64,000 nt of DNA from Takakia lepidozioides. Its lineage: Eukaryota > Plantae > Bryophyta. The stretch is taken from assembly GCA_030704615.1 (NCBI GenBank), contig CM060732.1:16120001-16184000 (forward strand). Reading direction: 5' to 3'. This document shows positions 9,445-59,390 of the stretch, piece after piece. Numbering within the stretch: position 1 is the first letter of the stretch; each line of letters begins with the position of its first letter. Below the pieces are notes generated by a model. That model ran no database searches. It saw nothing but the letters and a program-made list of their open reading frames with translations, and was not told where the DNA came from. The translations under genes were made by a program, and so were the position numbers.

Positions 9445-9540
9445 GATGCTTGCCTCCTGGCAGCAGGTTCTCTTTTCGTCTCTCCGCGTGTGTCTGGTGG
9501 CGTGAGCGACATTGGTTGCGTCCTAGCGCCGCGGCTCATC

Positions 9541-30815: not shown

Positions 30816-31796
30816 TCTTCTGGCAGGAATGGTCTGGAGACCAACGAGCAAATGATGCGAGAATGCACTGCCCAAACCAAAAACGTTTGTTTGTTTATGC
30901 AATGCACACAAGCCTGTGAGCTCCGGAAAACACCAAAGAGATTGAAGGACCAATCTGGGCACTCCATGCAACCCCAATCTCGAACGACAGTTTGTTCCCA
31001 GAATTTGCATCCCACGCACACATTGCAAACATGACAACAATGACACAAACCCATCCCATTTCAAAATTGGCCCCGAATAAAAGTAAAAAAAAACTTGATA
31101 TCAAGTGTCACAGTCATCAGAATGAGAATCGACCTCATGTGCTATGTCATCCACAAAGATTCCGGCCCCAACACCACGTCTTCTACCACGGCCGTCGATG
31201 GTTGGACTGCGAGTGCCATGAACGGACATACTGCCTGCGAGTGCCTCCGCATAGACGGGTAGCATGTAAGACTGAGGAGGACTTGAAAGAAGTCCAAAAA
31301 GGTGTGACAGCCCTGGAGGGTCAGTGGAAGCACACGGACTCCTGCACAAGTCGACAAAAACCCATTTTGAATACAGTGATGCAATGCACAAGTCCAACGA
31401 AGAGGATGTCTCCCATGTGCACTTTGCCTTAAGAACAGTGATTCTGGGTATTGAAACAAGAATGCAAGCATCCACAGGTTGAACTTACTCACAGGCAAAG
31501 TCGGAGTCCAGCTCCTTGTCGGACGTCTCCCCTTAATCAATATCACCGGGAAATGGCTTCAGAAGGACTTGAGAAGTGTGTCCACCCAAACCCATCAAGA
31601 GGTTCTTGTAAATCTCGGCATCCCCTTCAATCCCGAAGAGATGTTGCGCACTGGCCTTGCAAGCGTGGTACGAAGCACCTGCAATGGAATAGAAGGAAGG
31701 AAACAGACATTGAAGACTCATTTGGAACGGTGGGAAGTGCTGAAAGTGCAAGCTCAAACAAACCCGATCAAATGTGAATGCTGAAGAGACGAACTT

Positions 31797-35344: not shown

Positions 35345-35675
35345 AGTAGCCGCACACTGTTTTGGGGTCCCGCATTCGGTGTTTTTCAGTGGGCAGAAAG
35401 GGTGTGCGGCGCCGCACACTGTTTTGGGATCTCAATTTCGGTGTTTTTCAGTGGGCAGAAAGAGTGTGCGGCGCCGTACATTTTTTATTTTATTTATTTT
35501 TGGTTCCTGGTTGGTTGGACCCCAAAATAGTGTGCGGCGCCGCACACTGTTTTGGGGTCATGAATTCGGTGTTTTTATAATGGGCAGAAAGGGTGTGCGG
35601 TGCCGCACACTGTTTGGGGTCCGAATTCGGTGTTTTTCTAATGGGCAGAAAATGTGTGCGGCGCCGCACACTGTT
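35345..35675. repeat. Palindrome array 2: GTGTG-CGGCGCCG-CACAC x6, period 61-66 bp
   Basis: Starts at 35402, 35464, 35530, 35593, 35654 plus a half unit at 35350; two more at about 33386 and 33483. Confidence 0.9.
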
Positions 35676-36514
35676 TTCCAACCAACCAGGGGAAAAATAA
35701 ATAAATAAATAAAAATAAAAAATGATCTGTGGTCTGTGGTTTTCATAGTGACTAGTGGTGCAGCCCTCCTTGTTCATACATCCTCCCCGACTACGCTGAG
35801 GCCATTGCTCGTCAGCAGTGTCTCATGCTGTCTCCCCCAACTGCCTATTGGTCTGCTTGGAAGTCGAACAGGCACGTCGGAGCAAGGGTTTTGGTGGATG
35901 ATAGTCCAAGTTTCGGGGGATAACAGTAGTTCCGCCAGTGCAGACAATACATCCGCATGTGACTGAAATGCAAACTTTATAATGTTGTTGCCATTGGACA
36001 CATACTTCTTGGTTTATCAAAATTCAAATATCGGTTCTCTTGTTTTTCCGCTTCTTAAATATGAAAACAGCAGCAGGTTCAATCTGGGGTTTGCATTTTT
36101 TGATTGGGGCGAATGTCTCACATTTTCCATTATCATTCATCCGCAAGATTTCATGCATATTCATCCATATTCTGAGCGTGTCATCCACATTGATTCTCCT
36201 TCATCCTCATTAATTTATCCACAACCATTCTTCTATATTCGGTCTCAAACACAATCATTCAGCAACATTCATTCGAACCCTTTGTTCTGCACTTCTTCTC
36301 ATCGCCCAAATATGGTTCCCTATGTGCCGAATGTTCAAGTCCGCGGCTATAGGGCCCCTTCACGCTGTTCTGTCCGCGGTTATAGGTCCGTGCCTATGAG
36401 AATGATGTGGCGTGAACTGCGCTGGCGAGAACCAACGTGGCGGGAACTGCTGAGTGGCGTGAGCCTGGCTGCGCTCACACGCTCATGCGGCCAGGCTCAC
36501 GCGGAGGTTTTCCC

Positions 36515-36722
36515 CGTTTGCAGTGCGTCTGGCAGCCCTGGAAAAGGGCAAAGAAATCCCTGGTGACATCATCAAATCTGCAATCGTACCAGATGTCATC
36601 CTGAACATTGCTCTGGTGGCCATGTATGCTAAATGTGGGAGCATTGAGGATGCCAAGGGAGTGTTCAACACTATGGTTGAACGAGAGGTGGTGTCGTGGA
36701 ATGCGATGCTTGCAGGGTGTGC
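36515..36722 (+). pseudogene. PLS-class PPR fragment
   Basis: LEKGKEI.GDIIKS..VPDVILNIALVAMYAKCGSIEDAKGVFNTMVEREVVSWNAMLAG; matches 58560-58730. Confidence 0.85.
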
Positions 36723-38856
36723 GAGATTTACTATTTCATGAGCAGAAACCATGAGCCATGAGCCGCATGAGCCGCATGAGCGGTGAGCTGAAGTCTAAGA
36801 CACGCGGATTTCATGAGCGGACTCCTCCAAATTTGGAAATGCGGCAGATTAAACAAGTATTAAAATAATATTTTTTATTTGACCTTGCCGTTTTTGGAAG
36901 TTCCACATCCTGTAATGCGGCAAAGATATGTCGTCAATAACAAATCCGCTCATGGTTTTTTAGATCCGCTCATGGAAATGAGTGACCGTGCAACGAGAAA
37001 TCCAGTATACCACGGCAAAAGGACGTCATATACTGGCATGTATAGAGTATTTCGCGGTTTTACATGCCTTAACATTGGAATGAAGGTGACCCTTTTGCCG
37101 CGATTGAACCAATAGAGTCTGCACCAATAGAATCTGCAGTACTTCACAATTCTGTCATCTTCGGGTATTCGGCGGGAAAGGTTTGGGACTCAACTGGGAA
37201 ATGCGGTGCCGCATTAGGGTTCGCACGTGCGAAATGACTGGGCGGTTTGGTGTTGGCGAAGGCCGCATCTACCAATACCTACGACGTTACTTGGAAATGC
37301 GGCGCCGCAAAGTTTGGGAGAGCAGAAAAACAGGTTCCCTCCAACACACAAAAATACATGCACGTGGAAACACAAGTGAATGACATAGTATTATCTTAGT
37401 TCGAGCAAAACAAGTTACTGTAGGCAAGACATAAGTCGGACCTTTCTGTGGCCAAAGTCAAAGTTACTTGCAGCAGTACAGTTCTACTATCCGAAAAGGA
37501 TGGGCGTACCATTGTGTTGGGACCGCAAGCCAAGCTCACTGGTCCCCTGGATCCATATTCAGAAGAGTGTGCACCTCTTGGGGGCTCAACCCTGGTGCAT
37601 GTATGAAGTGATGAGTTGTGGAATTACACCGGAGTCTCTTTAGGTACACGTAGTACAGATGCTTGCAAGGGCAGTATGATGCCCCCTTGTTCGCCATGAT
37701 CTGGAAGTCGGTGCAATTGCAGGTGGGTAATTCTGAAATGGTGATGGTGTACACCTCATTGCGAACAGTTGAGCCTGCCGTGGCCCATCTGATACACACG
37801 CCCGAAGCCTGGTGGGGGCACTTCTGTCGAGCTCTGGATTGTACAGTTCATCCGAAGTGCATTCCCCATCTTTGTCTCGTTCACTTTTGAGGGAGGTCGC
37901 CGCCTCTTCGGTTTCCCCCAACGGTGTGTAGAATGCTTAGAGCTGTCACGTCCCATTGTTCTTGCTCTCACAGGGGTCGGTGGTGGAGGCTGTGGAAGCG
38001 GAAATGGTTGTCTGGGGACGTCAGTGTGCTGCACCATCCAAAATCCTGCAGCAGTAAGGGCGTCGGCCTTGTCGTGCGCATACATATCGCTACACAACTA
38101 CATCGCTGTCCAAACCACACCACACATATATGCACAATAAAGTAGTCTGCCACAATGATAAACAAGCTAAAAAGGACACACACTCCCAAACAAGAAATAT
38201 AAAATCCATCGCTATCACTCATTGAAACAGAAGTCGAGCCAGGGGCACCCCAAGCTATGGGGACTCCACCCCACAACAACCTGTATCCCTACATAAGCAC
38301 ACTCAAACCTAAACACATGCAGGAGCTCGATCGCGCAGACTCAACTCGAGAGAGATGAGCCGCGCGACTGCCGCTCTCGTGAAGATAAGACGGACCAGGT
38401 GTCAAACTAAACTTGACACCTGATTTAACACTTGACCTAAATCCAAGTGTTAAATACAATAACTAGTTTTATTCTAGCTGTTTTCACACTGTGCTTATTT
38501 AACTTGATAGCTGTCGTGCGCATACATATCGCTACACAACTACATCGCTGTCCAAACCACACCACACATATATGCACAATAAAGTAGTCTGCCACAATCG
38601 CCCCCCTAGCTGGTGGATAGGTCCCTCTACCTCCAGATAGCTACAAGATGTAATAGTCACAGCCGTACTAAGTCCTCTATCACTGTCCCTATTGTACTCA
38701 AACTCTATAGACCAAGGGGCCGGGTTCAAGAGTAGCCCCATCGTTAGTCGCCGTCTTGCAATCTGTGAACTTGAGCCAGGATCTCGTGTGTTCAAGGTCT
38801 CCTAGTAGCTGGGCCTTGCGTTGCTTGTTAGCCTTCCATGGTTGTATCCACTCCCA

Positions 38857-41435
38857 CTATCCAATGCAATGTGGACATAACCAATCCCCATCTGGAACCA
38901 TCTCAAGAGGTGGAGTCAAGCATCCCATATGCCAACCTCTAGAGCATCGATCGCACACCAGCATGGTGGCTGCCCCTTTAGCAGACCCACACAACATGCA
39001 CCTCAAACCTGCAGATACCACTGCCAGGTTTGGGTCAATCCTGCCATCGACATTCGGAAGGTGACATGGCGCACAATTACGCACATGGTCCTTCCAAGTT
39101 ATGCCATCCCGACCCTCCAAGACCAAGACGCCTGAGGGCAAGACCTCTCGAACCCTCAAAATAACACGTCCTGCAGTCACATCCAGGGTCGTAGGAGCAG
39201 TCTGCTGCAGATAGACATAGTCACCAGGGTTGAATCTCCGAACCCCAGGACGATAGCCCCCACCACGTATGGTAGCATACCTCAACGTATCACGGTGTTG
39301 TGCAATGGCAAGGTTCTCGAAAGCCATGGGCATGACTCTCTTGAACAACTCTGCACGCTGCTCACATGCACGTGCCCACACGTCCGGATCGTCAAGGTTA
39401 AGAACTGTAGTAGCTTCTCTGCGAATGGATGTAGGCAAATCCGGCTCTTGGCCAAAGAGAAGAAAGTATGGTGAGAAGGAGGCAAGTGATGCTTGCTTGC
39501 TGAACCTGTAGCCCATGGCTAACCAGGGTAACTGAAGGTCCCAATCTCCTAGGTGTCCCTTCTGCAAGCCATACTTGCGCAAACCCCTCTTTACTGTCTG
39601 AACAACTCTCTCTGCCAAGCCATCGGCCTCAGGATGATCCCGAGAAGTGGTGCGGTGGTCTATCAAGGCCTTATCACACAAAGCCTGAAACTCCCCCAAG
39701 AACTCTCTCCCTTGGTCCGTGAGTACCTCAGCTGGAGCACCAAATCGGCTAAGCACACAATCCAGGAATGCATACGCAGCTCCCTCACTAGCCTTATCAG
39801 GCAATGGAACCAATTCAATCCACTTGGAGAAGTGCTCCACCATCACCAACACGTACTTGTTGTGGCGCATGGTCAGTGGCAACGGCCCTGCGAAGTCAAG
39901 ACTCCACTCGTAGCCCAATCCCATGATCGGAAGAGGGTGCAATTGTGGAGTAGGGGCGTTGAATGAAGCACGCACCCTGTCACACACCATGCACCTAGCC
40001 ACAAATTGTTGCACCTCTGTGTGCATACCACGCCACCAATACTGCCCCTGCAGTAGACTATGAGTGCGTCGCACCCCAAAATGCCCCAACTCCTCATGGG
40101 CATGCCGCACTAACCGTGCCCGCTATGTTGGGTGAGGCACAATCCTCACTCGACCATCCTCCCACACTCGGAGCAGGTGTGTCCCCTCCCACCTGAACCT
40201 CTTGGCTTGTTGTAGGATCTGATCCCTCTCCTTGGCAGTCACAGTGGCTGCCATGTCTCCAGTGCGGAGGTAATCCAACACAACTGAATCCTCATGTATA
40301 TCTTTGGCGCCACCTTGCTCATTGTTGGCCTCAGGGTCCTCAGACACTTGATCTACAGTCATCCCTGTTGCAGGTCCAACCTGGCCTTCCACTGCCAAGA
40401 TACACAGAAATGCAGATGCATGCCATCCGGGCACCATCTCCTCGTCCGTCTCACCATGCCACCGAGCTCCAGTGTCATCCTGTTGGCTCGTGCATGGATT
40501 GCGACTCAACCCATCTGCATTGCGATTGACCAAACCCGGTCGATGCACCACCTGAAAGTCATACTCTTGAAGGATGAGTGCCCACCGTGCAAGCTTCCCC
40601 GTAAGCTTATCTGACTCCATCAACCACTTGAGTGGTTGGTGATCCGTGACAAGGGTGAAGAGATTGCCGTATAGATAGCACCTGAAGTGTGCCACGGCCC
40701 ACACTGCAGCTAAGCATTCTCCCTCATATGAGCTATACTTAGACTCTGCAACATTGTTCGAGCGACTAGCATAAGCCACTACGAACTCGCTTCCCTCATC
40801 ATCCACCTGTGTGAGCACCGCTCCAAGCCTCAGCATGCTCCAATCTGTATGCAGCTGAAAAGGACGCCCCCTGATAGGTCGTCTCAAGATGGGCGCCGAG
40901 GTCAACCTCGCCTTGAGCTCTTGAAAAGCTTGTTCTTGCTCATCTTCCCACTGCCACTCCTGGTCCACCTTGGTCAGCTTGGTTAGAGCCTTTGCAATGG
41001 CACTAAATCCCTTAACAAACCGTCTATAATAGTTTGCTAACCCCATGAAAGCTTGAACTCGGCTCACATCCGTGGGGCGTGGAACCTGTGCAATGGACTC
41101 TACCTTAGTCTGCTGTACCCCCAATCCTCCAGGATATATCATGTGACCCAGATACTCAATCTGGTTGTGGAAAAACTTGCACTTTCCCGGATGTAACTTC
41201 AATCCGTGTGTCCTCAAGCGCTCAAATATCCCCTGAAGGTGTCTCTCATGCTCCTCCACCGTAGCACTAAAGATGATGATGTCATCTATGTAGCACCGAG
41301 CAAACTCCACCCCTGCTAGAATCCTGTCCATGACTCTTTGAAACTCAGCGGGAGCATTTTTAAGCCCAAATGGTAAGAACCGCCACTGGTATAGGCAATC
41401 CTTCCCGTGCTCATTGATCCCCCAGAATGCCACCT
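38857..41435 (-). pseudogene. Gypsy pol: RT C-half, RNase H, integrase, PHD finger
   Basis: LPFGLKNAP, CYIDDII, TDWS..GAVL, HHCC zinc motif, SLDFAGP/TDQG/DGLAER DDE, CMLC...CDRC..GWHMGC...WLCPHC; one in-frame stop at 40123. Confidence 0.95.
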
Positions 41436-42023
41436 GTTGCAGTTTAAGGGTCATATCCCAATGGCTCAGGGCACCTGCACCTGCATCCACCACAAGAACT
41501 CCTATGGTTGGCTGGTCATCAACCCAACCTCACCATAGAAGAAACACTGGTGGTCTTGCTGGTCATCACTCCAGCCTCACCACCGACAGCATACTCTAGG
41601 ATTGACCGGTGATCAAATTCGGCCTAATCCCTATGAAAACAAGCGCCCACACAAAACCAACATGGCGCACAGTCAAGCATGCAGGTGTTGGGGGGGATCC
41701 AAACACAAGAAATCAAAACATCAACACCCCCACACCAAAATCCAGCTGCAATGCTGATCCTGCAGAATATCCCAGCCCAAAACCCCGGACTGACTGGCCT
41801 CCACCAAGAGAGGCTTTGGCAACTACGAGTACAAGGTAATGAAAATAGTACAGAGATGGAGGGGAAGAATAGAAGCCCGCCCAAGCAAGATCTAATCCTG
41901 ATCTATGCTATCAACTGCCAGACTTCTCTCAAAGTGCCTCACTCTACATGATGGTAAGGTGTAGGAGGTATATCTATGTCCAGAAACCTGCCACTAACCT
42001 TGTCCAAGCTACAGTAGCTCGCT

Positions 42024-42650
42024 CTAACCAACCCTCCTCCTCTTTCTGCCAGGTAGAGACAAGCAATACTCCCCTATCTCCCGCTCACTGAATACTAAAG
42101 AAAACAAAGGTAGGGTCTGATAGTCTCTCAACTCGAAAGCTTTGAGACGGTTGCGGGTGTCCTCATTACGAATGACTGCATCTCCTTCACGCACAACAAA
42201 CATGTCATTGCTGATGAACCCCCGCTCGTGGTTGCCCTGTGCAGAGCGTATCCGGCTGCAACCATGTCTGATTGCACAAACTTGTGTAGCTCCTGCTCCT
42301 CTGCTCCAGTACACCACGGCCTTGTGGCTGAACACCTTGGTCCCCGGGGCTGTCTTTGGCTGTGTTCCAAGCCTAGCTTTCACCCACTTTGGTATTTCAC
42401 CTACAGCTGCAGAACTGCTGGCTCCAACAGAGTTCTGACTGTCCAAGGCGATATTGAGGCCCTCAATGCCAACTACAGCAGTCTGTTGTCTACTGCTAAT
42501 GCCTGACTCCCAGTATGCAATCAACTCGTCCAACTGTTCTCCACTCAAATCAGTCTGAGTTCCTTGGGAAACATAAATCCTGTCCCCTTGTGTGCACAGG
42601 CTAAGAGAAGAGACCTGCCCTTCAATTACGTCCTCATTTCCCCCAGCCAT
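42024..42650 (-). CDS. Hypothetical 208-aa ORF inside the retroelement
   Basis: ATG-initiated, uninterrupted, ends in basic RKRRR; no family recognised. Confidence 0.4.
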   Translation of the reverse strand: MAGGNEDVIEGQVSSLSLCTQGDRIYVSQGTQTDLSGEQLDELIAYWESGISSRQQTAVVGIEGLNIALDSQNSVGASSSAAVGEIPKWVKARLGTQPKTAPGTKVFSHKAVVYWSRGAGATQVCAIRHGCSRIRSAQGNHERGFISNDMFVVREGDAVIRNEDTRNRLKAFELRDYQTLPLFSLVFSEREIGEYCLSLPGRKRRRVG

Positions 42651-43404
42651 GCAAGGAGTACATCCACAGATTTATGTCTCATGTAGACCACAACAATTCT
42701 GGACACAGAATTGTGGATCTTTCATAGCACACTCACACTCTAAAAATTCCATAGATTTTTAGCAGAGTCCCCAAAACAAAAACCAGGTGTAGATATGTAG
42801 ATTTCCCCTTTCTGCAGCTCTCCACCCAAAAACTGAGTCAAACGGAGTCCATTTGACAAAGTTATGACCAACCAGGCTCTAAATCATTTAAATTATATCA
42901 AAGTTTTTTTTTTTTTTTTTGTAACACCAAAACGTTCCTGCCATTAAGAACCGTTCCCAGGTTTCATTTGTGGTTACAGGTGCACCACAGACTTGCTCGC
43001 TTAGTGAGCTGCTTTGCTCCAGTGACGACTCTCGAGCTCGGGTGTATGGCTATGGCGATGGTGATGGCCTGTGCAGCGTCAGGCATCTGTTTCCCGTGAT
43101 GCAAGCACTCGAGCCATCCCTAATGCAGGGACAAGCCCTGATGATACTCTGTCAGAATTTGGTGGGCAGCTGCCATCTGCACTTGCTCTCTCTTCAGACA
43201 ATCTTCGGACCTAGTGTCAAATGTGGAAGTGGTGAAGGAGCTTATTGACAAAGACAACTGTGTTGGACTATCCACAGAGTAGAGAGTAACCAGATCAGCT
43301 TCGTCATTTAGTTGAAGCTTGGAGCATAGGTCTGCATACTCCGATAGGGCAAGGCACTATCTCAATTCAGGTAGCGATCATGTTCAATGTAGAAACATAC
43401 CCGC

Positions 43405-43945
43405 TAGCGGTATACTGATCCACCGCAACATCCCCGTTGGACTTGTCTGCAATGTTCCCTGCAGCTTTGCAAGCTCGTGTACCGAGTGTCTGGCCAAGTT
43501 GGGCAGCAACAGCATTCAGACTGGCCACAAACTTCAAGGTTGGATAACCACTCACTCCATGTCTCGGTCACAGGTCTCCTCTGTCTTTGAGCTATGTTGG
43601 GTCGACTTGCTGGAGGGAAAGGTTGCTGGTCATTCCAACTGACACCAAGCATTTCAGTTCAGCCTTCTACCCGGCCGGCGCTACCACTGCCGTTGCTGTC
43701 CTACCAGCCAATGTCCCCGACCCCGTGCTTGCGACCCTACGCCACTACGCTACCTCCCTGCAGCTCCAACACATGATTAGAATCCCAGTTCTTCACATAC
43801 ACCGCCATCCTCCGAATTCAGATGAATACCAGCATACTGGCTCGCCCATTGCACATATTGCGTCTTCCACCGAAGATAGAATAATTATTGGTGAAGGTGA
43901 GTATCAATCGTTTTCCCTGTCTCTTGGCTTCAGCTACCACAAAGC
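43405..43945 (-). pseudogene. Mosaic of captured host gene fragments (GH5 mannanase, PDI/thioredoxin, GH1 beta-glucosidase)
   Basis: FVVAEAKRQGKRLILTFTNNYSIFGG..QYVQWA and YVKNWDSNHVLE (43764-43943); HGVSGYPTLKF (43529-43561); GNIADKSNGDVAVDQY (43409-43459). Confidence 0.7.
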
Positions 43946-46900
43946 CGAGTGCATCCCTTCCATTTCACCATGTCTGCTATAGCGTGGAGCGAGAGCTTGA
44001 GCGTGGAGCTTGTAGAGCGGGAAAGCTTGAGCTGAGCAGATGAGGCATTTCCTCACTTCCTTGGTCATAACTGTCATATAATGAACACTCCATTGGCTGT
44101 GTTGAAGAAGCTTAATCCATGCAGCTTCAGAAGCACTCAGGTAGATAATCCGCATGTTGTGTTGAATATTTTCAACACTGTAAGCGGGTTTTTTGCATCG
44201 TTACTCTTCATCGATTCTTTCGAGATAACCCGTGGTGCGTAGCACGATGTTATGCCATGGCTGCCAGGGCTCCCTTTCCCGTACACTCTTCACTGCTCCT
44301 CACCTTCTTTCTATAAATCGCTTCTCTGTCTATGTTGCTTTAACAAGGTCTGGATTTGTCACCATTGGACTGACCAAGTACAGCAAAGGCTGTAGAGCTG
44401 CCTCTCGCGGTGCTCCTGTACAGTTGCAGTTATAGCGACGCACCGAGTGCCCAACTTGCAACAACTATTCAACCGCAAGCGTTTGTTCCCTTGTCACAAC
44501 CACACTCTTGCATGCATGCTGCATACAGTCTTCCACCTTCGGAGAAGAAGTCCAGGGACAGAGTTACGGTTGTCAGCAGCTACCAACAAACATAGTCTTC
44601 CTTACATTTGCGCATCATCCTGTTGCTCCACCAGCCTTGTCACAAACATAATCTACCATAATTTTCTTCTCTCACTTCTAAAACAAAAACCACAAGTGCT
44701 TAAAACTAAACTCACCTCTGGCACTCACAGATGCAAGCCTCATCTCTCTCGAGTGATAAACAAGCTAAAAAGGACACACACTCCCAACACAAGAAATATA
44801 AAATCCATCGCTATCACTCATTGAAACAGAAGTCGAGCCAGGGGCACCCCAAGCTATGGGGACTCCACCCCACAACAACCTGTATCCCTACATAAGCACA
44901 CTCAAACCTAAACACATGCAGGAGCTCGGTCGCGCAGGCTCAACTCGAGAGAGATGAGCCGCGCGACTGCCGCTCTCGTGAAGATAAGACGGACCAGGTG
45001 TCAAACTAAACTTGACACCTGATTTAACACTTGACCTAAATCCAAGTGTTAAATACAAATAACTAGTTTTATTCTAGCTGTTTTCACACTGTGCTTATTT
45101 AACTTGACAGCCTCAACTTGACTCAGGTCGCAGCCCGGTTCCACCGGCCACACCGGGGGAGCCTCTGGCATTGTTTGTATGCCGTACTTGGGCTTTCCAT
45201 ACACGCAAGTCATAATGTCGTGCCTGCAGAACCAGAATTGGGTGGTTGTTGCCTCCGCAAACTTTGCATGGACAAATCTTCCTGTAAAAGTAGGAGCAGG
45301 GACAGCCCCATGTGGATTCCTCCTTATCATCTCTAAACAACGTTGCCGTGTATCCACTCGAATTGTGGAACACCTGCCTCGAAACGACGGCTTTGTGCGA
45401 GCAATTCTCCACTATGACGCAGACACAGTCGTCTCCACAATGGCTTGGCCATACTGCATAACAGCGGGCGTAATCAGGGGCAAGCGAGCGGTGGGAATTT
45501 CTCGCACGAAATCCCCGCTTGAAGGCGATGGCGATCTGGAATTTCTTGGGCTTCCACTGCTGGAAGACACATTGTGCGGCAACATGACGGGACCTTGAGG
45601 TGCTGTCCGAATGTTCCTGTCGGATCTCCAGGAATCCTCTTCGCACCCGGGTTCCTCTTCAATCCTCCGCCTCACAGGGCGAGTACGGACGTCCCCCTCT
45701 AGGTGTTCACCTCTGCGGTGCAGAGGCGTCCCTTTGATCTTCTCTCGCAATGTTGTCGCCCATTTCAGTGGATTCTTCGACCTCGTAGCTGTTCGTACCA
45801 ACAATTCCTCCCTGTCCGGCCCAAAGCCCCATTGTTTCCCACTCAGGAACTTGTAATACGTGGCTTGCTGCATGATTGCTCTGTCGATGTCCTCCGTTGT
45901 GGCCGTCACTACGTCCACCAGATGTGCGGCAGAAGACGCTCGCCAGGAGGAGTGCACTGATTCTGCCATATTCGTGTTTGGCATGTCCGTGTCGGAATCC
46001 AAGCACCGCTCCTACAAGGACACAAACAATGGTGAGGGACCAATGGAAAGGTCCGTAATAGAAAGACAATTGCACGAAAATGACAGCATCATACCTCTTG
46101 CATGTACTGTCCGAACTGTCGATACCGGAAATGCCACCACCCCAACCAGCTGTGCAAGGCTCCCAGATTGGTTGTCTCCACTGCACCTGACGTGTTCCAC
46201 CAAGCCTCGATGATAGCAAACTTAACCTCCGCGTCATCAAATGTGGGTGCATCCTTCTACGCCGTACAAAGGACATGGTGTTCAGCCTGGAACCCCTTTC
46301 ATCTCGCAGATTGCAATCGTCATGAGCCTCTTGGAGTGATAGTCATAAATATGCGCACCCATAGTCACCCACTGATGGTTTATAATTCGCTTGATGTGAT
46401 CAAACATCACCCAAGCATTCGACAAGTTTCCAGTTGTCATGCGAGTGACCAAGTCGACTCCACTCCCAGGCCCACACGTCGACATTTTAAACATGTAACA
46501 ACGATCATATTTGCTGCCTTGCCCTAGAAACCTGCTACCTTGGATGTAGTCATATCCAGTCATTCGTTTCACCTCCAGGATTGAGTGCATGTCCGACCCC
46601 CGGCCGAACTCCTGCTTGCAAGATACGATGTGATTCCGCACATTCGGACTACAAACGTGCGAGACGGACTCCAACAAGTCAAGCATCTCCTCTTCGTTCA
46701 AGGGCACTCGGTCTGAACAATCTTTAGACATGATTTTGCCAAGAGCAATCTTGTGGGTTGCCTTCAGCTGAATCTGCTTTGGTCTGGCTCTGGGGCTCAA
46801 TTTCACCTCCTCTTTTATGATGTCGTGTGCTTCCTGCACAGCCTCACGCATGTTGCCTCTCGCCAAGGGGTGGCAGTGGACCCCAACGTGTATGCAAGCT

Positions 46901-48241
46901 CTAGTCAAGTCTGGGAGCAAATGGATTACGTAACATTGCTTGGCTCTACACATGGACATGCACGTCGGTGGTTCTTTGCAATGTGCGCACTTGAAAGTAC
47001 CCGCAGGAACTTGGCTGAAGACAATGAATGGATGATGGGTTGTGCCAGTCCAATCCGTCTCGTTTCTCCGCCCTCATTTGGAGAGAAAGTGGAAGCAGAC
47101 GGGATTGAGGCACCTCAGCTTCCCCACAGAGGACGTATCGTACACGAACACCATCAGCAATTTTTGTGCTACTGGTCTTCGTCACACACCAGGGGTGTCC
47201 GTCATGCTTTCGATCCATGTCTGTTAACATCCCGGAGGCTTTGTTTGACGAAGTAACAGGTGGAAACTCGAAGATGACATTGCCATCGACTTCGGGAGGC
47301 AGATACGTTACCTTCCTGATTGGAAATTTGGCATAGTCGAGAGCAGCCAGCTCGGAGCGAGAACCATCGAGGTGATGTTGCCGTAGGAGCTGCACAATGG
47401 ACCGGGTTGGAGTTATGCTCGAGGGTACATGCGTAGCACCTGCAGAGACGTCCATGTCGGATTTGAACGACCGTGTGGAGGACATGGGGACCTCAATGCA
47501 CTCATCTTCCTTGTCGGAAATGTCGAATACGTCCACACGAGAAGCTATGGAGGGTCATGACGGTCCAGGTCGGGAATGATTATCGTTGCATACCTCTCTA
47601 TTGGCAGTGGCCGCCTGTCACGTGCCATTCGATTCCGCAACCTCCGTCGTTACCTAGCACGACAATGGTCTCGTCAACCTATCCAGGAACATCCTTCCTT
47701 TCTTCTTCCAAATAAACTGTGCCCGGTTTGAGCTTGAATTTGGAACAAAGGTAAGTTTCAGTCACTCTGCAAAGTCCTCCCTCGTTTGGGATCCAGGCTC
47801 TCCCAAGTTGCGAAGGACAGCAAACTATAGTGTAGGAATTCGGAGCCATCAAAGACCGCATGAAGTTGGCAAGTGCGAGGTTCAGTATAGCGACAGACCA
47901 AGGCTCACAGGCACCATCTAAGTGGATCTGCAGAGTCCATCGACGATTGGAAGTTGCTCATTGAAGTGGAAAGTATTGTTTCAAGCTACATGCATAAAGG
48001 TGGGACGTGTGATTCCATATCCAGTAAGTATGACAATGATGGCCGATTCGGCGATGAAATAATATCTCCTGACAGTTTCTCCTAAGGGTTGATCCAGCAG
48101 TATTCTCGGTGCAGACATGAACGTTCGCACTGACAAGTGCCAGGACTGTGAGTTAAAACGGTAAGACAACCAAGTTGTGCTCATTAAGACAGGCCGCAAT
48201 TGTGTTGTTTCGGAACAACGCAACCCATTGAGGTTCCGCAT

Positions 48242-49370
48242 GCAGAAATGAGGTTCCGCATTTCCGTCCGGAGTGATACTTTTGATTGCTGTTGGACAGA
48301 AATATAGCGCCGCATTTTCGTTTTGCATCTCAGTCATGCACCAGTGCGACTGAAATGCGGCACCGAGTTTCCGTCCAGGGGAAACCTTTATACTCTCCAG
48401 AACGGAAATGCGGTGCCGCATTTCCATCCAACAAGAACAGTATGTGACAGTGGAACGGAAATGCGGTACCGCTTTTCCGTTCTGATTGAAAATCATGAAC
48501 CACTGGAACTGAAATGCAGCACAACATTTCCGTCCGAATCGCACCTTCCGACATTCCACAACGGAAATGCGGTGCCGCATTTCCGTTTTGTATCTGAGGC
48601 ATGGAGCTGAGGGACGGAAATGCGCCACCCCATTTCCGTCCGGTTGAGACCTTCATACGCTCCAGAACGGAAATGCGGTACCGCAATTCCGTTCTGACTG
48701 AAAATCGTGAACCATCGGAACTGAAATACGGCACCGCATTTCCGTCCGAGTCGCACCTTCCGACATTCCAGAACAGAAATGGGGCACCGCAATTCCGCCC
48801 TGGTGAGACCTTCATACTCTCCAGAACGGAAATGCGGCACCGCATTTCCGTTCTGACTGAAAATCGTGAACCATCCAAACTGAAATGCGGCAACGCATTT
48901 CCGTCCGAGTCGCACCTTCCGACATTCCAGAACGGAAATGCGGCGCCCCATTTCCGTTTTGTATGTGAGGCATGGATCTGTGGGATGGAAATACGGCACC
49001 GTATTTCCGTCCGGGTGAGACCTTCATACTCTCCAGAACGGAAATGCGGCACGACATTTCCGTTCAACAACTAAGGTATGTGAAGGTGGAACGGAAATGC
49101 GGCACCGCATTTCCATTCTGATTGAAAATCATGTACCACGGGACCTGAAATGCGGCAGCGCATTTCCGTCTGAGTCGCACCTTCCAACATTCCAGAACGG
49201 AAATGCGGCACCGCATTTCGGTCCGGTTGAGACCTTCATACTCTCCAGAACGGAAATGCGGTACCGCATTTCCGTTCTGACTGAAAATTGTGAACCATCG
49301 GAACTGAAAGAACGGAAATGCGGCACGACATTTCCGTTCAACAACTTAGGTATGTGAAGGTGGAAATGCG
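48242..49370. repeat. Palindrome array 3: 26-bp ACGGAAATGCGGCRCCGCATTTCCGT plus 27-bp spacers, strict 53-bp period, about 21 units
   Basis: Repeat starts 48296, 48349, 48402, 48455, 48508 ... 49197, 49250, 49303. Confidence 0.95.
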
Positions 49371-49586
49371 GTTTGGTTGGGTGGGGGGTATTTTTTGCCT
49401 CGATTTCTGTGAGGTCGTTGGAGAATGCTCCCATAGGCCCTCCTCTGGCTTCCAGGATCATTTTATTCTACAAAATTAACTTTTAGGAACTATTTTGACA
49501 CCTACTCAAACCTACTTAACAGGGGAAGGGTTTAGAGTTATGTCTTTTTAGAAAACCTCGTTTAGTGTTGTTCCGATTGTTGTAGA

Positions 49587-51924
49587 ATGGCAGAGGGCTA
49601 GGACGATGACCGTCATGGAAGAGATGACCCCAATGAACATGGACCACCTCCTAAGAAAATCAAATGGTCAAGGCAAGACTTACATTGGGAAGTATATGGT
49701 GACCCTAGCATACTAGCAGAAGAGGGCTGGGAGGATATTCCGGAAGAGTTCCGGTGGCCGATGGCGAGATACAAAAAATTCGGGAAATGGTACCACATCA
49801 ATCAATTATGGCCTTTGGATAGGCATGATGTACAAACCCGGAACAATTACGCAAAGTCCAGGTCTTGCACGAACTTGCATTTCCAACATAGGGCGAATGA
49901 GTTGCATTGCATATTGTGGGGTCAACCTCTCTTAAAGGGTCAAATCCCGTACACCTTGGCAGCCATGTTGTACGTGGAGGTCATACTCTTGCGTCCAGTG
50001 AATTGGCAAACTGCTAGTAGGAGCAACGCAAGGTTGCTATACGATTTGGAATACATCCCGGACACGTTCGGAATACAACCGGCTGCAACGTTAGAGGAAC
50101 AACTGGCGGAAAGAGGCCAGCGAATCAGGACCCCACAGAACCGGTTAGACTGACAAACACTGCGCATAGCCGAGTTGGAAGCTAGATTGCAAGACATGCC
50201 TCCAAACAATGAAGACACTGGTGTCCACAATGAGGATCGAACAAACGTCGTGGACATGGACGCGGACTTTGCGATGCCCAATCGCAGTATTGACCTCATC
50301 ATTCAGGAAATTACGGACGTCCTTGACCATGTGGCCGATGAAACCATGGTTGAGGAACAGCGAATTGCGGATGAGAGAAGGAGGAAAGGAAAAGAACCAG
50401 TACTGGAAACCGGGGAATGCTCGAGGGTCGTCATTCAATCGGAGATGAACCTGATATTAGATGTCGACCGCGTTACAAAGGAGCCGGACATTGTCATAGC
50501 AACTGCATGGCGCTTGTCCAAAACGCTGGAGATTCAGGCATGGGTCCCATTGAATGACGATTGAGAGAATTGGGTACAATAGGCGACCCATTTGGCCTCC
50601 AGAGAAGCACAAGTGGAGCGGGCACTGTAAGGCTTGCAACGTGTCGCACACATGTCGAACCGTAGCGTGGATAACATTTATGCCAACATGCAAAGGTATA
50701 ACGATCTTCACATCGCATCAAGCGTGTTCTCCGGGTATACCAATTGGGCAGATGTGGATTCTATGTTCGATCGATGTGAGCACAGAATTTTTGGGTCGAA
50801 CAGAAGCATAAACTGGGAATTGGAGATAGATGAAGAGTGGGACACCACAACAAGGATGACCAGCCACATCAAACCGGCCCAGAGGAAGAAGATACCACGA
50901 GGCGTTTTGCCGTCATGGATATCAGATGGCACAGTTTGTTCGATGTGTAGGAATCCATACTACCCAGAGGGATGTCATGTGCTTGGATCATGTGGACATA
51001 TGTTCCATCTCACATGTCTTATCTCGCAAACCGTACGGACGAGCGCTTGCCCAGAATGTCGTACACCAATCCATCGTCGTTTCTATGAGCTGGTGGGCTT
51101 GGAGGATCGGATGCCCATAGATTTTGAATACAATCGACACAACCTCCCATTGGATGGGTTACCATACACATTTCTGAATTGTGTGCATTGGGGCAAGAAC
51201 TTGGTATGGGATGCAGACAGAGAGATGCATAGCATACATGCTGGAAACCCGGCATACATAAAAAATCCCCAATATTTCTGGGTCACATCTGATTGGGAGA
51301 TAACCATACGTGCGGAAGGCATTCGAGATTGGTGAGAGAGAGCAGTTTTGCCACAATCTGGGATGGCATTGGAGTCAAAGAAGGTCCAGGTTTATCCGGC
51401 TCCCACAGGTTCCATAGGTGCCAGAGGAGAACGAATTGTATGACCGACAACCGATTAGGAGACATTTGTTGCTGTCCGAACTGGAAGATGCTATAATATG
51501 TTAACGCCGAATAAATGATGCGTATGAGGCGGCTTATCGTCGAAACGACACAATGATTAGGGACAGGGCCCGTGAGAGGCAGTTGGAAAGTTTCAAAAGT
51601 ATCATTAAGGCAGTTGTAGAGAAATGGAGGCGACTATGGACAGACCGTTATCATCGTGTTTCGGGGGCTGTATTGCTGGATATGGACGGCCTCGTTGCCG
51701 ATTTGCATGCAGCCCGAGCACTTGTTCTCGATCCACCTCCGCCACATCGTGAGAGTGAAGAAGAAAGTCAACTTTCGCCGCAAAGTAGGCGGATGCAGAC
51801 CAGAATTGATCACATGCCATTGGGCCCCTCATTGACCACGAGATCACGGTCGCAAGCTCTGGCAATTGGCAGTGCAAATCAGGCCACAGCATCAAATTCC
51901 ACATCCTCGGACACTGACGACTAG
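49587..51924 (+). pseudogene. TE accessory gene with RING-H2 zinc finger
   Basis: AAMLYVEVILLRPVNWQ; CSMC...SCGHMFHLTCL...CPECR; several stops and frameshifts; divergently oriented to the transposase. Confidence 0.7.
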
Positions 51925-52477
51925 GCTTTTAATGACTGGCAGTGTAGTACATATACAATATGCATTTTTGTTGTACCTTGAATATTGTTGGAAAACACGG
52001 TGATGGCATTCCGCCAAGTTTGTATATCACCAATTTTGTTAATACACAATGCACATGTGCGGCACCTGCCAATTTCAATTGCATGAACATCGTTTTCTTC
52101 ACATTTATACTCGTGTGATAGGGAAAAAGTAGTTCACCCTGTAAACAAATTTACAATGGTGTCATATTTGGTCATGACGTGTATGTGGGTATTTGCAATG
52201 AATTCCGAAAGCTGGAGAACAAGGAAAATTGATGTTAACAAATAAGTTATAACGGGTTACGAACGGTCGTCTTCCAAACAAATTTCGCCTGATCCCTGCG
52301 TATTTCATAATCATTTCGCAAAATCTATGATCTTTCTACGAACATACCCACAAAGTATACGTCCCAGTGTAATATGAGATCAATCAAAATTATTTTGTGC
52401 TACATTGAACACACTGGCCAAGTTTCAAAGCGAACGAAAATCATTTGGATGGGCAACCATCCGTTGGCCCATTGGTT

Positions 52478-54232
52478 TTAGTCGTGGTTAAAGCATCGTG
52501 GACACAACCATTCTCCACTAGGAACCTCCTCAAGTGGCAGTGTCAAACATCCCATGTGCCACCCCCTTGAGCATTTGTCACACACCAACATGGTTGCGGC
52601 ACCACCAGCATGCCCACATAGCATGCAACGCAACCCTGCAGGTACCACTGCAAGGTTGGGATCTATCCTCCCATCCAAATGTGGAAGGTGACATGGCGCA
52701 TAATTGCGCACATGGTCCTTCCATACCATGCCATCTCGACCCTCCAGAATCAACATTCCTGAAGGCAACACCTCCCGGACCCTTAGAATCACACGTCCTG
52801 CTGTGACATCTAAAGTCGTAGGCGCTGTTTGCTGCAGATAAACATAGTCCCCACCCTGGTCCGTGAGTACCTCGGCTGGAGCACAAAATTGGCTAAGCAC
52901 TCGATCTAAGAATGCATACGCAGCCCCCTCACTTGCCTTGTCAGGCAATGCCATCAGTTCAATCCACTTGAAAAAATGTTCCACCATCACCAGCACATAC
53001 TTGTTATGGCGAATCGTTAGTGGCAATGGGCCTGCGAAGTCAAGACTCCAACGATAGCCCAAACCCATAATGGGTAAATGATGCAATTGTGGAGTAGGTG
53101 CATTGAAAGAAGCCCGCACTCTATCACACACCATGCACCTTACCACTAACTGTTGCACATCCGTGTGCATGCCCCGCCACCAGTACTGTCATTGCAACAA
53201 ACTATGAGTGCGCCGCACCCCAAAATGTCCCAACTCTTCATGGGCATGGCGTACCAATCGCGCTCGTTGTGTTGGATGAGGCACAATCTTCACTCGTCCA
53301 TCCTCTCATACTCGGAGTAGGTGAGTCCCCTCCCACTTGAACCTCTTGGCTCGTTGTAGGATCCGATCTCTCTCCTTAGCAGTCACACTGGTTGTTGTCT
53401 CTCCTATACAAAGGTAGGCCAACACTGCTGTATCTTCATACACATCATTAGCATCACCAAGCTCCTCACTGATCTCCGGATCGTCATGTACACCATCTAC
53501 ATGACCAATCCTATGGGATGGACCAGCTTGAGCTCCCATTGCTAGGATGCACAAAAAGACAGATGCATGCAATCCTGGCACCATCTCCTTATCCGTCTCA
53601 CCATGCCACCGAGCTCCAGCATCATCATGCTTGCTCGTGCATGGATTATGACTCAACCTATCTACATCCCGGCTGGATACACCACCTGGAAGTCGTACTC
53701 TTGAAGCATAAGTGCCCACCGTGCAAGCTTCCCTGTAAGCTTGTCTGACTCCATCAACCACTTCAATGGTTGGTGATCCGTGACAAGGGTGAAGAGGTTG
53801 CCATAGAGGTAGCATCTGAAATGTGTCACCTATACCGCAGCTAGACACTCCCCTTCATTTGAGCTATACTTCGCCTCGGCATCATTGTTCAAGCGGCTGA
53901 CATATGTCACTACAAACTCTCTTCCCTCGTCATCCACTTGTGTGAGCACTGCTCCAATTCCCAGTATACTCCAATCCGTATGTAGCTGGTTGAGAAACTT
54001 AAGGCTTGATTGGCTTCTGCACCTATTCTGAGGCGGCTTATTCGGGGGCGGCTGCTAAATCCCTTGATAAACCGTCGATAGTAGTTTGCCAACCCCATGA
54101 AAGCACGAACTCTACTAACATCTATGGGGCGTGGAATGCGTGCAATGGCCTCCACCTTCGTCTTTTGAACACCCAGTCCTCTAGGGTATATCATGTGGCC
54201 CAGATACTCAATCTGGTTGTGGAAGAACTTGT
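52478..54232 (-). pseudogene. Second, more degraded Gypsy RT/RNase H/integrase/PHD fragment of the same family as 38857-41435
   Basis: Near-identical peptides (FFHNQIEYLGH; SLDFAGPLP; PHD); internal deletion in the integrase core. Confidence 0.9.
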
Positions 54233-54239
54233 AGTACAA

Positions 54240-54380
54240 CACACCCTATGTAATTTCGACGATTTAGTTTGACGCTGGCGTTGACTGTTGTCACTTTCGA
54301 CTGTTCCAACCATTTTGCAGTCAAAATTTATATTAAAATATTCAAGGTGCTGAACAACCACGAAAATTTTGACTGTAGTG
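54240..54380 (-). mobile_element. Possible CACTA terminus
   Basis: Ends TTTTGACTGTAGTG (reverse complement CACTACAGTCAAAA) with TGACTG/CAGTCA repeats. Confidence 0.35.
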
Positions 54381-55085
54381 AGAGACTTTGACTACCTAAA
54401 ATGAGCTAACTGAGACAACCAGTTAAGCAATGGCACGTGTAATCACAATATATAAATTATATAACAATATATATGTGATAATAAGAAGTAAAAAAATACC
54501 TTTTTTTTCACTGACCCAGCACATTAATAGTAAACTAATCGTGTGCTGGTTAAGGTTTAGTGAAACAAAACAACTGAATTACCTGAACGAGTGATAAACA
54601 AATGCCTTGCTGGCAGCTATTGGATAAACGTATGAAATATAATTTTTGTGCACTGGATGAACGTATGAACGAACGATAAAGAAAACGCCTTGATGGCAAT
54701 TATTGTATGAACGTATGAACGGATGATAATGCACTTGGCTCGAGTTTAGGATTGCTAGATCACAGTGTGCAGCCTGGCTGGGACTGTGTTTTTTTTGGGT
54801 CGGCGTGGTTCGAGAGCTCCGCAGGCTTAGGGACTTCGCGTTTGTTTGTCTTTGTGCCACCATCTGTGTTTTCTTAAGGTTCGCGAACCAGGATAAGCGG
54901 TTTCTGAAAGACTAGTATCTTGCTGTGTGCACATGAGAGAGCGGGTGGGCGGGGGGAGGAGAGAATAGAGAGAGAGAAGTGCCGCGCAGCGAGTGTACTG
55001 TTTGTGGGATCAACCTGTACGTTTGCTCTTGTTGTATCGGCCATTGTCACGACGTGTGCTATATGGGAGCTTTAGAGCGGAGACA

Positions 55086-58000
55086 GCAGGGAGTGTTCAA
55101 CAGTATGGCTGAACGAGATGTGGTATCGTGGGGTGCGATGATTGCAGGATATGCACAGCAAGGGCGCGGGATGGAGGCTTTGCAGACATATGAACACCTT
55201 CTTCAACACATTTCAGCCTGTTTTCCCTGTTATCAGGATTCAGAGTCATCCCTAAATTTTCAGGTTGAATTCTGCAAGTTAGCTCGACGTTGGTGCAAAA
55301 AGGTGAATGCCTGTTGGAAGCGCAAGTCAGCATAGGAACTAGTGTGAGAAGTAGGGTTAGGGTGTTTGCTGGAACAAATCTAGGCTGTCATTGTCAGCTG
55401 CTAGCAGCAAGGCAAGGAGGTACTATGCATGATTTGTGCAGAGGTATGGATAGCCGAAGGAGCAGGGATAGAGTGTGGGTCCAGATTCATCCAAGAGGGC
55501 CGGATTTCAAGCTCCAGATTACCTATGAATCCCTGTGGAATGATAGCTACAAGAAACCTACATATGTAGATGGTCAACTGGAAGCCGCAACAGCAGCAGC
55601 GGCGGCACAATTGATAAAATTCAGGCACTGCTACTCAAGGCACCTTCTTCAACACATTTCACCCTGTTTTTTCCTCTTATCAGAACCGGCCCTAAATGTC
55701 TCTTAAGGCCTTCAGCAGATGGGTTGAACAGAGTCACGTGGTTTACTTTTTCAACTTGATTTTCAGATCTTAGGGCATGCGAGAGACAGTGTCAACAATC
55801 AATCATTCTTCCTGCAAAGTCTTGGTCTGCACAATCTGAGACTTGAGATTCTCCACAAAGGCCAACATGTTTTTAGTTGAGGATCCACCCTCTGCCATAT
55901 CTTCATGAGCACAATATTTGAGCTTCCCTACCCTGGTTCGAATTGCCATGCCCTCCTCCCCTATCATTAGCTCCCTGATGTGTGCATGATTTGTGCAGAG
56001 GCAGAGATAGCTGAAGGAGCAGGGATAGAGAGTAGGTCTAGATTCATCCAAAAGGGCCAGATTTCAAGCACAAGATTACTTATGATTTCCTGTAGATCAA
56101 TAGCTACAAGAAACCTGCATGGGTAGATGGTCAACTGTCATGCCGCAGCAGCAGCGGCACAACTGATAAAATCAGGCACTGGTAATCGAGGCACCTTCTT
56201 CACATTCACCCTGTTTTCCCTCTTATCAGAATCGGCCCTGAATTTCCATGTTGAATTCTGCAAGTTAGCTGGTTGAGTGAATGTAGTTTGGAGTGACTTT
56301 GACATGATACTGCCACTGTGACAACAGGAAAGTATCCAAAAATACGTAACAGAGATGAGGAGAAGCTGTGGAATGAATACTTTTCTGACTCCAGTCAATG
56401 GTGGGACACCAGGCAAAAAGGTGAATGCTTGTTAGATTACAGGAGAGTAGCAGACGCAATTCAGTATAGGAACTAGTGTAATAAGCTGAGTTGGGTGTTT
56501 CCTAGAACAAATCTAGGCTGTCATTATCAGCTGCAAGGCAAGGATGTATGCATCATTTGTGCAGAGGCATGGATAGCTGAAGGAGCGGGGATAGAGTGTG
56601 GGTCCAGATTCATCCAAGAGGGCTGGACTTCAAGCTCCAGATTACCTTGATTTCAGGTGGATCAGTAGCTACAAGAAACCTGCATGTGTAGATGTTCAAC
56701 TAAAGGCAGCAGCTGTAGTGGCACAGTTGATAAAATCAGGCACCTCAACCATGACCACAGCTGTTGAAATTAGAGGATCAAGAGAGGGAGTCCACAATGC
56801 CTCTTCTGGCACTTCTGGGCATGTGAAGATACTTGTGCTGCAGGATTCAGATATGTCTGTCTGTTGCTTAAGTGCATCAAGATGGATGGTCTGGAAGCTG
56901 GAAAGCAGGTGCACACTCACATTATCCAAAGTGGATTCACACCAAATGTTTTTCTACTCAACACCCTTGTCAACATGTATGTTAAGTGCGGGAGCATCAT
57001 GGATGCTCACCAAGTGTTCAACAGAATGCCTCAATGATCTTTGATCACGTGGAATATTATGTTGGCAGGATTTACCAAGCGTAGGTGTGGTAGAAATGCT
57101 TAGGAGACCTATGAGCAAATGTTGCGTGAAGGGGTGAAGCCCAACCACATCGCGTTTGTTTGTGTTTGCAATGCGTGTGCAAGCCTGGGAGCTCTGGAAA
57201 AGAGGGAAGAGGTCCATAGTGACATTGTCAAAGTTGGAATTGTACCCGATGTCATCCTGGAAACAGAAGCGGCAGCAGCCCAATTGATAGAACAATTCGC
57301 TGCTAATGAAGGTATCTTCTTCAATACATTTCACCCTGTTTTGCCATGTTATCAGAGTCGTCTCTAAATTTAGAATTCTGCACGTTAGCTCGTTCATGAT
57401 GTGAGCTGGCATGAGTTTTATAAAGATCCTTCACGATGGTGGGACAACCGCAATCACAAGGTGTGGCTGCAAAGGTGGGCTCTTGGCTCCTGTTAGTACC
57501 ATGATTTGGTGTTCTTCCTGATGTTTACAAGGTTCTTGGGAGAGTCAGCTTGGTCTTAGTAGGCCGTGTTTCAATCTCTGCCTGCTCAGCTGCACCGTGG
57601 TGGTTCTCACAGACCAACATTACCTGACTACAGACACAAACATCACACACAAGAGGTCATTTTGGGTTGATGCTCAGTCAAATCCTCCATGGGTCAAGGA
57701 CAATGTGGTGAGGGCACCTTCTTCTTTGACCCGTTGCAGCCTGTTTTGCCCCCTCATCAGACTTGGCCCTGAGATGCATATTGAATTATGTAAGTTAGCT
57801 CATTGGGTGGATCTGTGGTGGTTTGGAGTGACTTTGAACTAGTGTGATAAGTAGGGTTGGGGTGTTTGCTGGAACAATTCTAGGCTGTCATTGTCAGCTG
57901 CTAGCAGCAAGGCAAGGATGTATGCATGATTTGTGCAGAGGTATGGATAGCTGAAGGGGCAGGGATAGAGTGTGGGTCCAGATTCATCCAAGAGGGCTGG

Positions 58001-59390
58001 ATTTCAAGCTCCAGATTACCTATGATTCCATGTGGATCAATAGCTACAAGAAACCTGCTGCATGGGTAGATGGTCAAGTAAAGGTAGCAGCTGCAGCGGC
58101 ACAGTTGATAAAATCAGGCACCTCAACCATGGCCACAGCTTCTGAAAGAGGATCAAGAGAGGGAGTCCACAATGCCTCTTCTGCTGGGCATATGAAGGTG
58201 CTTTGTGAGGCAGGCAGACTGACAGAGGCTCTACAACTTTAAACCAACAAGGCATTTCAGCATTCAGATACGTCTGTCTGTCTCTTGCTTAAGTGCATCA
58301 AGATGAAAGGTCTGGAAGCTGGAAACAGGTGCACACTCACATTATCCAAAGTGGATTAACGCCAATGTGGGAGCATCATGGATGCTCACCAGGTTTTCCA
58401 CAGAGTGCCTCAACGATCTTGATCACGTGGAATATAATGTTGGCAGGATTTACCAAATGATGGGTGTGGTAGGAGTGCTTTGGAAACCTATGAGCAACTG
58501 CTGCGCGAAGGGTGAAACCCAACCACATCACATTTGTTTGTGTTTGCCATGCGTGTGCAAGGCTGGGAGCTCTGGAAAAGGGGAAAGAGGTCCATGGTGA
58601 CATCGTCAAAGCTGGATTTGTACGAGATGTCATTCTGAACACTGCCCTGGTGGAGATATATGCCAAATGTGGGTGCATTAAGGATGCGAAGGGAGTTTTC
58701 AACACTATGGCTGAACGAGATGTGGTGTCATGAGATGTGGTGTCATGGAACGTGGGGGGAATGTGATGCTTGTAGGGTATGCACAGCAGGGACATGGAAT
58801 GGAGGCTTTGGAGACCTATGATCAAATATTGATGGGGGAAGGGGTGAAGCGCAACCACATCACGTTGCAGCATACTGGTACTTCACAGCCATGGCAGCTC
58901 TCTTAGCCCCTCCATTTTTTTTTCTTTTGGTTTTTTTGGCACTGGGAGAGAGCAGCAGCTCTGCTGTCTCCTTCCCCTTGCTTATGCCGATCGTTAAAGT
59001 GAAAATTGTCATTCTGAACTCTACCTTGGTGGACATGTATGCCAAATGTGGGTGCAGCAAGGCTGATGTGAAGGGAGAGTTTGACAATATGGCTGAACGA
59101 GATGTGGTATTTTGGAGTGCCATGATTGCAAGGTATGTGCAGCATGGGTATGGGATTAAGGCTTTGGGAACATAAGAGCAAATGATGTGGGAAGGGATGA
59201 AGCCAGATCAGGCCGTCATGTTCATTTGTTTTTGTAATATGCATATGCGAGCCTAGCAGCCCTGGGAAGGGGCAAAGAGGTTTATGGTGACATTATCCAA
59301 GCTGAAATTGTACCAGATGTCATTCTGAGCATTCCCCTGCTGTACATCTACGTCTAAGCACTGCCTTGGTGGATATGTATGTCAAGGCAG
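55086..59390 (+). pseudogene. Tandem cluster of decayed PDF-motif plus PLS-class PPR gene copies
   Basis: Four copies of IHPRGPDFKxxITYDSLWINSYKKPAWVDGQL (about 55485, 56042, 56608, 57982); WWDTRQK and WWDNRNHK exons; PPR motifs MYAKCG.I.DA..VF..M.ERDVVSW; many stops. Confidence 0.85.

Follow-up and report, generated by a model that had tools for sequence, protein, structure and literature searches.

The window analysed here, a 64,000-nucleotide stretch of DNA from the bryophyte Takakia lepidozioides, contains in this order the left end of a DNA element, a broken transposase gene, an array of short palindromes and a broken accessory gene. The left end (36723-36743, plus strand) abuts a PPR-like fragment and is matched, on the opposite strand, by another end at 20320-20340; it starts with GAGAT, like maize Mu. 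Neither a matching right end nor a 9-bp target-site duplication of the left flank was found within the window. Motif searches near the left end located a palindrome half site (36835-36846, plus strand) and two single palindrome cores, for which no strand is assigned, at 37197-37215 (centre TG) and 37293-37309 (centre CG). The lone motif copies that an earlier note on this DNA had placed near the other end of the transposase gene are thus present, at 37197 and 37293, together with the half site at 36835. A probable 3' remnant of the transposase, read by eye, lies at 37756-38069 (minus strand), beyond a Gypsy-type retroelement (38070-45111, minus strand) that sits within the transposase gene and is not part of the system. 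This retroelement was recognized by its RT/RNase H- and integrase-like open reading frames and by its end repeats (38156-38511 and 44754-45111), which are 98.6% identical. Its ends do not form two plain LTRs but are laid out as A-B-A ... B, with identical 87-bp A segments and 356-bp B segments of 98.6% identity, and its integrase terminates in a PHD-like finger.

The main part of the putative Mutator-like transposase pseudogene occupies 45112-47536 (minus strand) and has a Cys/His-rich N-terminal domain (47425-46798). It is followed by the palindrome array (48242-49364, no strand assigned), with 21 palindromes, a 53-bp period and five spacer classes, and by the accessory pseudogene (49587-51924, plus strand), which comprises an N-terminal domain, a coiled coil (recognized in homologs), a RING-H2 finger and a C-terminal region. 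The array therefore lies, as the earlier note had described, between divergently oriented transposase and RING genes, and it fills the divergent promoter region between them. Its end is around 220 bp upstream of the accessory start codon.

Other mobile DNA surrounds this locus. Element ends related to that at 36723, at 20320-20371 and 21896-21926, carry tandem CATGAGC motifs; two end variants are arranged one after the other, and a pair of ends is oriented face to face, 1.5 kb apart. Pieces of what appears to be a second, distinct Mutator-like transposase were read by eye at 13302-16070, with no Pfam match. An open reading frame at 28052-28642, close to Gypsy gag-pol, matches Transposase_32 (PF20167) weakly (E=0.024). 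Many decayed, block-duplicated PPR-like fragments were found at 30646-30930, 36529-36722 and 55088-59350, the left flank of the element among them. A pair of inverted arms 5 kb apart (16906-17055 and 22144-22504), with a 9-10-bp CACAGCC minisatellite, appears to mark another DNA element end.

The transposase gene is degenerate, with a frameshift, stops and a deletion of around 82 codons near 46295 that eliminates part of the core, around the second catalytic Asp and the CxxH motif. The window copy is 35-52% identical to homologs in environmental assemblies, in which the Asp, CxxH and Glu motifs are conserved in MULE-type order. One homolog (P0080) gave a weak match to Pfam Transposase_mut, below the cut-off (E=0.015). 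From this match and the motif order we tentatively regard the transposase as Mutator-like (MULE-type DDE). The broken genes were searched piece by piece rather than as a joined protein. An Rfam scan of 36000-46900 gave no match.

The array consists of 19 full palindromes of 26 bp each at 48296 + 53n (n = 0-18), the last at 49250, plus two offset end copies: a degenerate one at 48242, 54 bp ahead of 48296, and a full one at 49312, 62 bp past 49250. The best copy is 48826-48851. The earlier note had counted about 21 copies starting 53 bp apart from 48296 to 49303; the number and the period hold, but the period ends at 49250, and position 49303 carries a 9-nt stub instead of a full palindrome. 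Each of the 19 internal spacers, like the final one, measures 27 bp, in agreement with the uniform length claimed previously. Clustering resolved the spacers into five reused classes; starting at 48322, they run C D E A B C D A B D A B C D E A B D A E. This is exactly the order that had been read from 48375, with a C spacer (48322) preceding and an E spacer (49338) following that series. The classes had been described as dissimilar, and most pairs indeed have only 3-9 of 27 positions in common. However, classes B and D agree at 19/27 positions (p=0.002), and C-E and C-A at 14/27 and 13/27 (p of about 0.01); the two resulting groups (B/D and C/E/A) are unrelated by alignment. An inversion link between classes (E with reversed D or B), spotted by eye, was not significant.

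The window contains 25 copies of the strict palindrome core, CGG-(CG/CA/TG/TA)-CCG, where 1.1 would be expected, and all of them are confined to three elements with differing arms. Two of these carry further arrays with the same core and different arms, at 18610-18960 and 35349-35677; their periods are looser (65-66 and 61-66 bp, respectively), and a broken methylase-like gene lies close to each. Single core copies were also observed at 17476, 20179, 33391 and 33488.

The order of the spacers shows how the array grew. It parses as CDEAB / CD-AB / D-AB / CDEAB / D-A / E, from an ancestral block C-D-E-A-B of 265 bp. Thus, the array is a five-unit higher-order tandem repeat, in which the block was duplicated and whole units were trimmed by recombination. 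A variant at repeat position 3 is linked to spacer class, and so is the central dinucleotide of the palindrome; both links are predicted by tandem duplication and not by spacer acquisition. The central dinucleotides are CA in 13 copies, TA in three, CG in two, TG in two and TT in one, and the central CpG is kept in only 2 of 20 cases, compared with 61 of 80 CpGs in the arms (seven deaminated). These states fit the decay of a central CG by deamination of 5-methylcytosine, as had been suggested. However, because they follow spacer class, they represent some four or five events, not 19.

The same order bears on the resemblance of the array to CRISPR. A 26-bp palindromic repeat with constant 27-bp spacers falls within the CRISPR format (repeats of around 23-47 bp and spacers of similar constant length), and the earlier note had called the array CRISPR-like. 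The likeness is one of looks only. CRISPR spacers are unique and independently acquired, whereas here five classes are reused in the order of tandem duplication, in the context of a eukaryotic transposon and without cas genes. No cas-like gene adjoins the array, the flanking reading frames being the transposase and the RING gene amid plant retroelements and PPR-like fragments, and the spacers match nothing else in the window. The array would fold well as RNA (-484 kcal/mol, compared with -320 ± 7 kcal/mol for shuffled sequences), as would any palindrome array. We consider it extremely improbable that the array acts as RNA, be it a transcript rich in hairpins, a decoy for small RNAs or a source of CRISPR-like guides.

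The spacers have diverged far more than the palindromes. Tree length is 1.42 changes per site in the repeats versus 4.38 in the spacers, roughly three times less change in the repeats; the class consensus repeats are identical at 22 of 26 positions, and the spacer cores agree mostly in only two or three of the five classes. Nevertheless, 20 units that require between 82 (minimum) and 142 (maximum likelihood) substitutions, counts that are rough in a recombining array, require no indels. Other duplicated DNA in the window, which is partly coding and hence a conservative yardstick, has 65 gap openings per 862 mismatches (0.075). At this ratio 6-11 indels are expected in the array, and at half of it 3-5. 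The chance of finding none is about 0.002-0.05 with the minimum substitution count and 0.005 or less with the maximum likelihood count. Since no indels accompany these 82-142 substitutions, where 3-11 are expected, the 53-bp spacing and the palindrome site look constrained, in an estimate that is based on one array copy. The proposal that spacer length rather than spacer sequence is under constraint is thus supported, the spacers drifting while the palindrome is conserved.

A neutral minisatellite, in which palindromes promote recombination that keeps the repeats alike and fixes the register without any protein partner, would account for the higher-order arrangement with its block deletions, for the class-linked variant at repeat position 3 and for the relatedness of some spacer classes. 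It accounts poorly for the lack of indels, for the dispersed single copies that retain the same core, and for the occurrence of the same design, with different palindromes, upstream of accessory genes in other contigs. We regard such a neutral origin as improbable.

A period of 53 bp corresponds to 5.05 helical turns, and the earlier note had proposed a design in which five turns place all bound proteins on the same face of the DNA. Comparable arrays do not follow this rule. In the two other window arrays that share the core, successive palindromes are spaced by 133, 66 and 65 bp and by 62, 66, 63 and 61 bp; a palindrome array at locus L017, in another contig, has a period of 60 bp, and one at L004 alternates between 125 and 130 bp. 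Arrays of the same core or layout thus span 5.7, 5.8-6.3, 6.2-6.3 and 11.9/12.4 turns, and about half are off phase. Because comparable arrays show periods of 60, 61-66 and 125/130 bp, helical phasing was rejected as a general rule: the fixed period is family-specific, and whole helical turns are not the rule.

The accessory gene reads as one frame of 582 codons with five internal stops to 51335, followed by a frameshift, and ends at 51924. Its RING-H2 finger (50937-51059, plus strand) has all eight ligands in the C3H2C3 pattern, by which the protein is a predicted E3 ubiquitin ligase. The conserved N-terminal domain (49635-50070, plus strand) belongs to an unassigned family and has a confident structural model (pLDDT 85), which matches no solved fold among PDB or viral structures. 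An alignment of the domain, including a row translated from 49602-50150, had no matches among PDB sequences, and neither DUF1985 (the VANC domain) nor any other Pfam domain was found in 69 family members or in full-length homologs. A word-indexed search with the RING-containing reading frame returned no homolog, within the length and word limit of that search. At least 76 relatives of the N-terminal domain were found among 50%-cluster representatives, and none in viral contigs. Intact homologs are 732-1077 amino acids long and have a common order of N-terminal domain, coiled coil, RING-H2 and C-terminal region.

Several of these relatives adjoin hAT transposases (L003, L007 and L009/L011), and the copy in L003 lies inside long inverted repeats. 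A tree built from the RING region places the window copy, on a branch of its own, in a group with P0001 and the hAT-linked copies that has 100/100 support; with ten rows and a midpoint root, no direction of transfer is claimed from this tree. At locus L001 a related transposase is accompanied by a RING gene that is more distantly related and divergently oriented, and there is no array. The earlier note had regarded the RING gene as cargo. A RING-H2 gene does lie beside the array; judged by its at least 76 relatives, their common domain order and the location of several of them inside hAT elements, however, it belongs to an old transposon gene family that rides in Mutator and hAT elements, and is not a fresh host capture. 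L003 contains an apparently complete hAT element (2850-13200) with long inverted ends and the RING accessory gene ahead of the transposase, as well as a second accessory copy (280-10) placed head-to-head. L017 (7357-8759, 9183-11792 and 12263-12689) has an intact RING accessory gene, P0124, with dense clusters of GACGG/CCGTC at a 20-21-bp period on either side, and no transposase was found in the 21.8 kb of this locus.

Taken together, we think it probable, though well short of certain, that the array served a dead, multi-gene Mutator-like transposon in cis, as a set of operators bound by a protein of the element family. A dimeric, sequence-specific protein of this family would bind each palindrome and spread along the array. 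Once bound, it could keep both divergent promoters open against host methylation, or tune them, as VANC does for VANDAL. The fixed 53-bp spacing would then reflect a footprint particular to this family, and not an integral number of helical turns.

As to the binder, the leading candidate, for which we put the chances slightly below even, is an accessory protein of ParB/methylase type, which sister copies or the lost right part of this copy would have provided. It is placed first because the palindrome core is common to ParB/methylase-linked elements. The core CGG-NN-CCG occurs in three window elements, two of them beside methylase-like genes. It is also found three times, against 0.2 expected, in L002, which combines this type of transposase with a ParB-like gene, and it is absent from L001, which has the related transposase and in which no ParB gene was found; this contrast between ParB and transposase is one of two loci. 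Furthermore, L017 and L004 have palindrome arrays of fixed period immediately ahead of their ParB-like genes. For these two loci and for L002, the ParB label comes from a motif read by eye, not from a Pfam match. A search of 36723-55000 turned up no trace of a ParB or methylase gene; the right part of the element is missing, and such a gene may have been lost with it. The minus-strand ParB-like cluster of L017 (12773-19196) includes a NIF phosphatase domain and is preceded by a 20-bp palindrome with a 60-bp period and two alternating spacers. In L004 (13153-17107) inverted arrays bracket the ParB-like gene, and a 255-bp unit contains two different palindromes at 125/130-bp spacing.

The next candidate, possible yet on balance unlikely, is the RING protein itself. 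Its N-terminal domain would read the outer ACGG/CCGT ends of the palindromes, the coiled coil would supply the dimer, and the RING-H2 finger would ubiquitinate chromatin or silencing factors on its own element. The array stops around 220 bp before the RING start codon, and RACGG clusters in the window are confined to the array. GACGG/CCGTC clusters, irregular or with a 20-21-bp period, occur upstream of RING homologs in six of the loci; such clusters accompany homologs in L003, L006, L007, L009-11 and L017, and none occurs in L001, L002 or L004. Because the window palindromes end in the related ACGG, the RING protein stays a candidate. However, such clusters could instead be sites of the hAT transposase, there is none in L008 and L012-16, most of which have little upstream DNA, and the outer ACGG ends are missing from the lone motif copies beside the left end.

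The structure of the N-terminal domain likewise argues both ways. Four of the six best rows of an Atlas structure search were plant-transposon domains, the nearest named ones being PF20167 (TM 0.42) and DUF7745 (TM 0.36); PMD and the DUF1985 domain of VANC have a common fold (10.1101/2024.09.27.615353; PMC13547354), and four Lys/Arg columns are conserved in the domain. On the other hand, the TM scores are below 0.5, the domain has no PDB match although a structure of VANC21 (9LNK; PMC13547354) exists, profile comparisons with PMD-like and Transposase_32 open reading frames were not significant, and the net charge is only about +2. Kinship of the domain to the PMD/VANC group may be taken as a lead only. 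The fuller proposal, that the accessory protein is a DNA-targeted ubiquitin ligase with a remote PMD/VANC-like domain on ACGG sites and a RING-H2 finger that marks chromatin or silencing factors, is speculative, and we consider it doubtful.

The third candidate, which we also judge unlikely, is the transposase, whose Cys/His-rich domain would bind the palindromes in both places, those at the element end serving transposition and those of the array self-activation. Motif copies do lie 110-570 bp from the left end, and the palindrome half site resembles the GCM consensus, which counts toward this candidate. However, searches for a GCM fold in the N-terminal domain gave no Pfam, PDB-sequence or Atlas match (model pLDDT 36), and the transposase of L001 is 63% identical to that of L002, yet L001 lacks the core motif. 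The AtMu1 transposase is a sequence-specific self-activator that alone binds and activates its own copies (10.64898/2026.08.24.746577); its binding peaks are at TIRs. AtMu1 resembles the present case as a Mutator transposase acting as a sequence-specific activator of its own copies, but differs in that it binds the TIRs of a one-gene element without an internal array.

The operator reading has two close parallels. VANC, which is described as dicot-specific (PMC13547354), binds to motifs that have been multiplied into tandem repeats (Hosaka et al. 2017, PMC5735166). Like VANDAL, the present element would belong to the Mutator superfamily and has an accessory gene and a short motif tandemly amplified in non-coding DNA, including the region upstream of the transposase. 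The parallel with VANDAL drawn earlier is apt in that the array sits in the transposon promoter, as VANC target arrays do. However, VANC targets are 8-9-bp non-palindromic motifs instead of 26-bp palindromes, VANC carries DUF1985, which was not found here, and VANDAL is without a RING gene. In algal transposons, inverted-repeat arrays lie next to ParB genes, and binding has been proposed (Petroll et al. 2025, 10.1101/2025.02.11.637652; PMC12477816). Plavaka PAG3 and Sola1-1_Ec32, of red and brown algae, similarly combine a tandem inverted-repeat array with an accessory gene in a large DNA transposon; their accessory genes, too, move between transposon families, and self-binding is proposed for the algal ParB. 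The present case differs in its land-plant, Mutator host and in its RING-H2 gene with an unrelated N-terminal domain, with no ParB in this copy. Thus, the array would work in a way that resembles VANDAL/VANC and the proposed ParB arrays, and differs from both in its accessory domain.

To our knowledge, VANC is the only accessory protein shown to protect the DNA of its own transposon by way of an array of motifs; the ParB counterpart is a proposal of 2025. A land-plant Mutator element with a long, clean palindrome array and three candidate binders offers a direct test, in which one 26-bp probe is set against three domains. The RING accessory family, with its well-modelled domain that matches no solved fold and its occurrence in Mutator and hAT elements, is absent from the literature searched (mostly papers outside subscription), in which no report of RING accessory genes in bryophyte transposons was found. 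Such a family would add ubiquitination to the known counter-defences of transposons. A DNA-targeted ubiquitin ligase, if real, would represent one more separate class of transposon anti-silencing protein, which Mutator and hAT elements of non-seed plants have exchanged.
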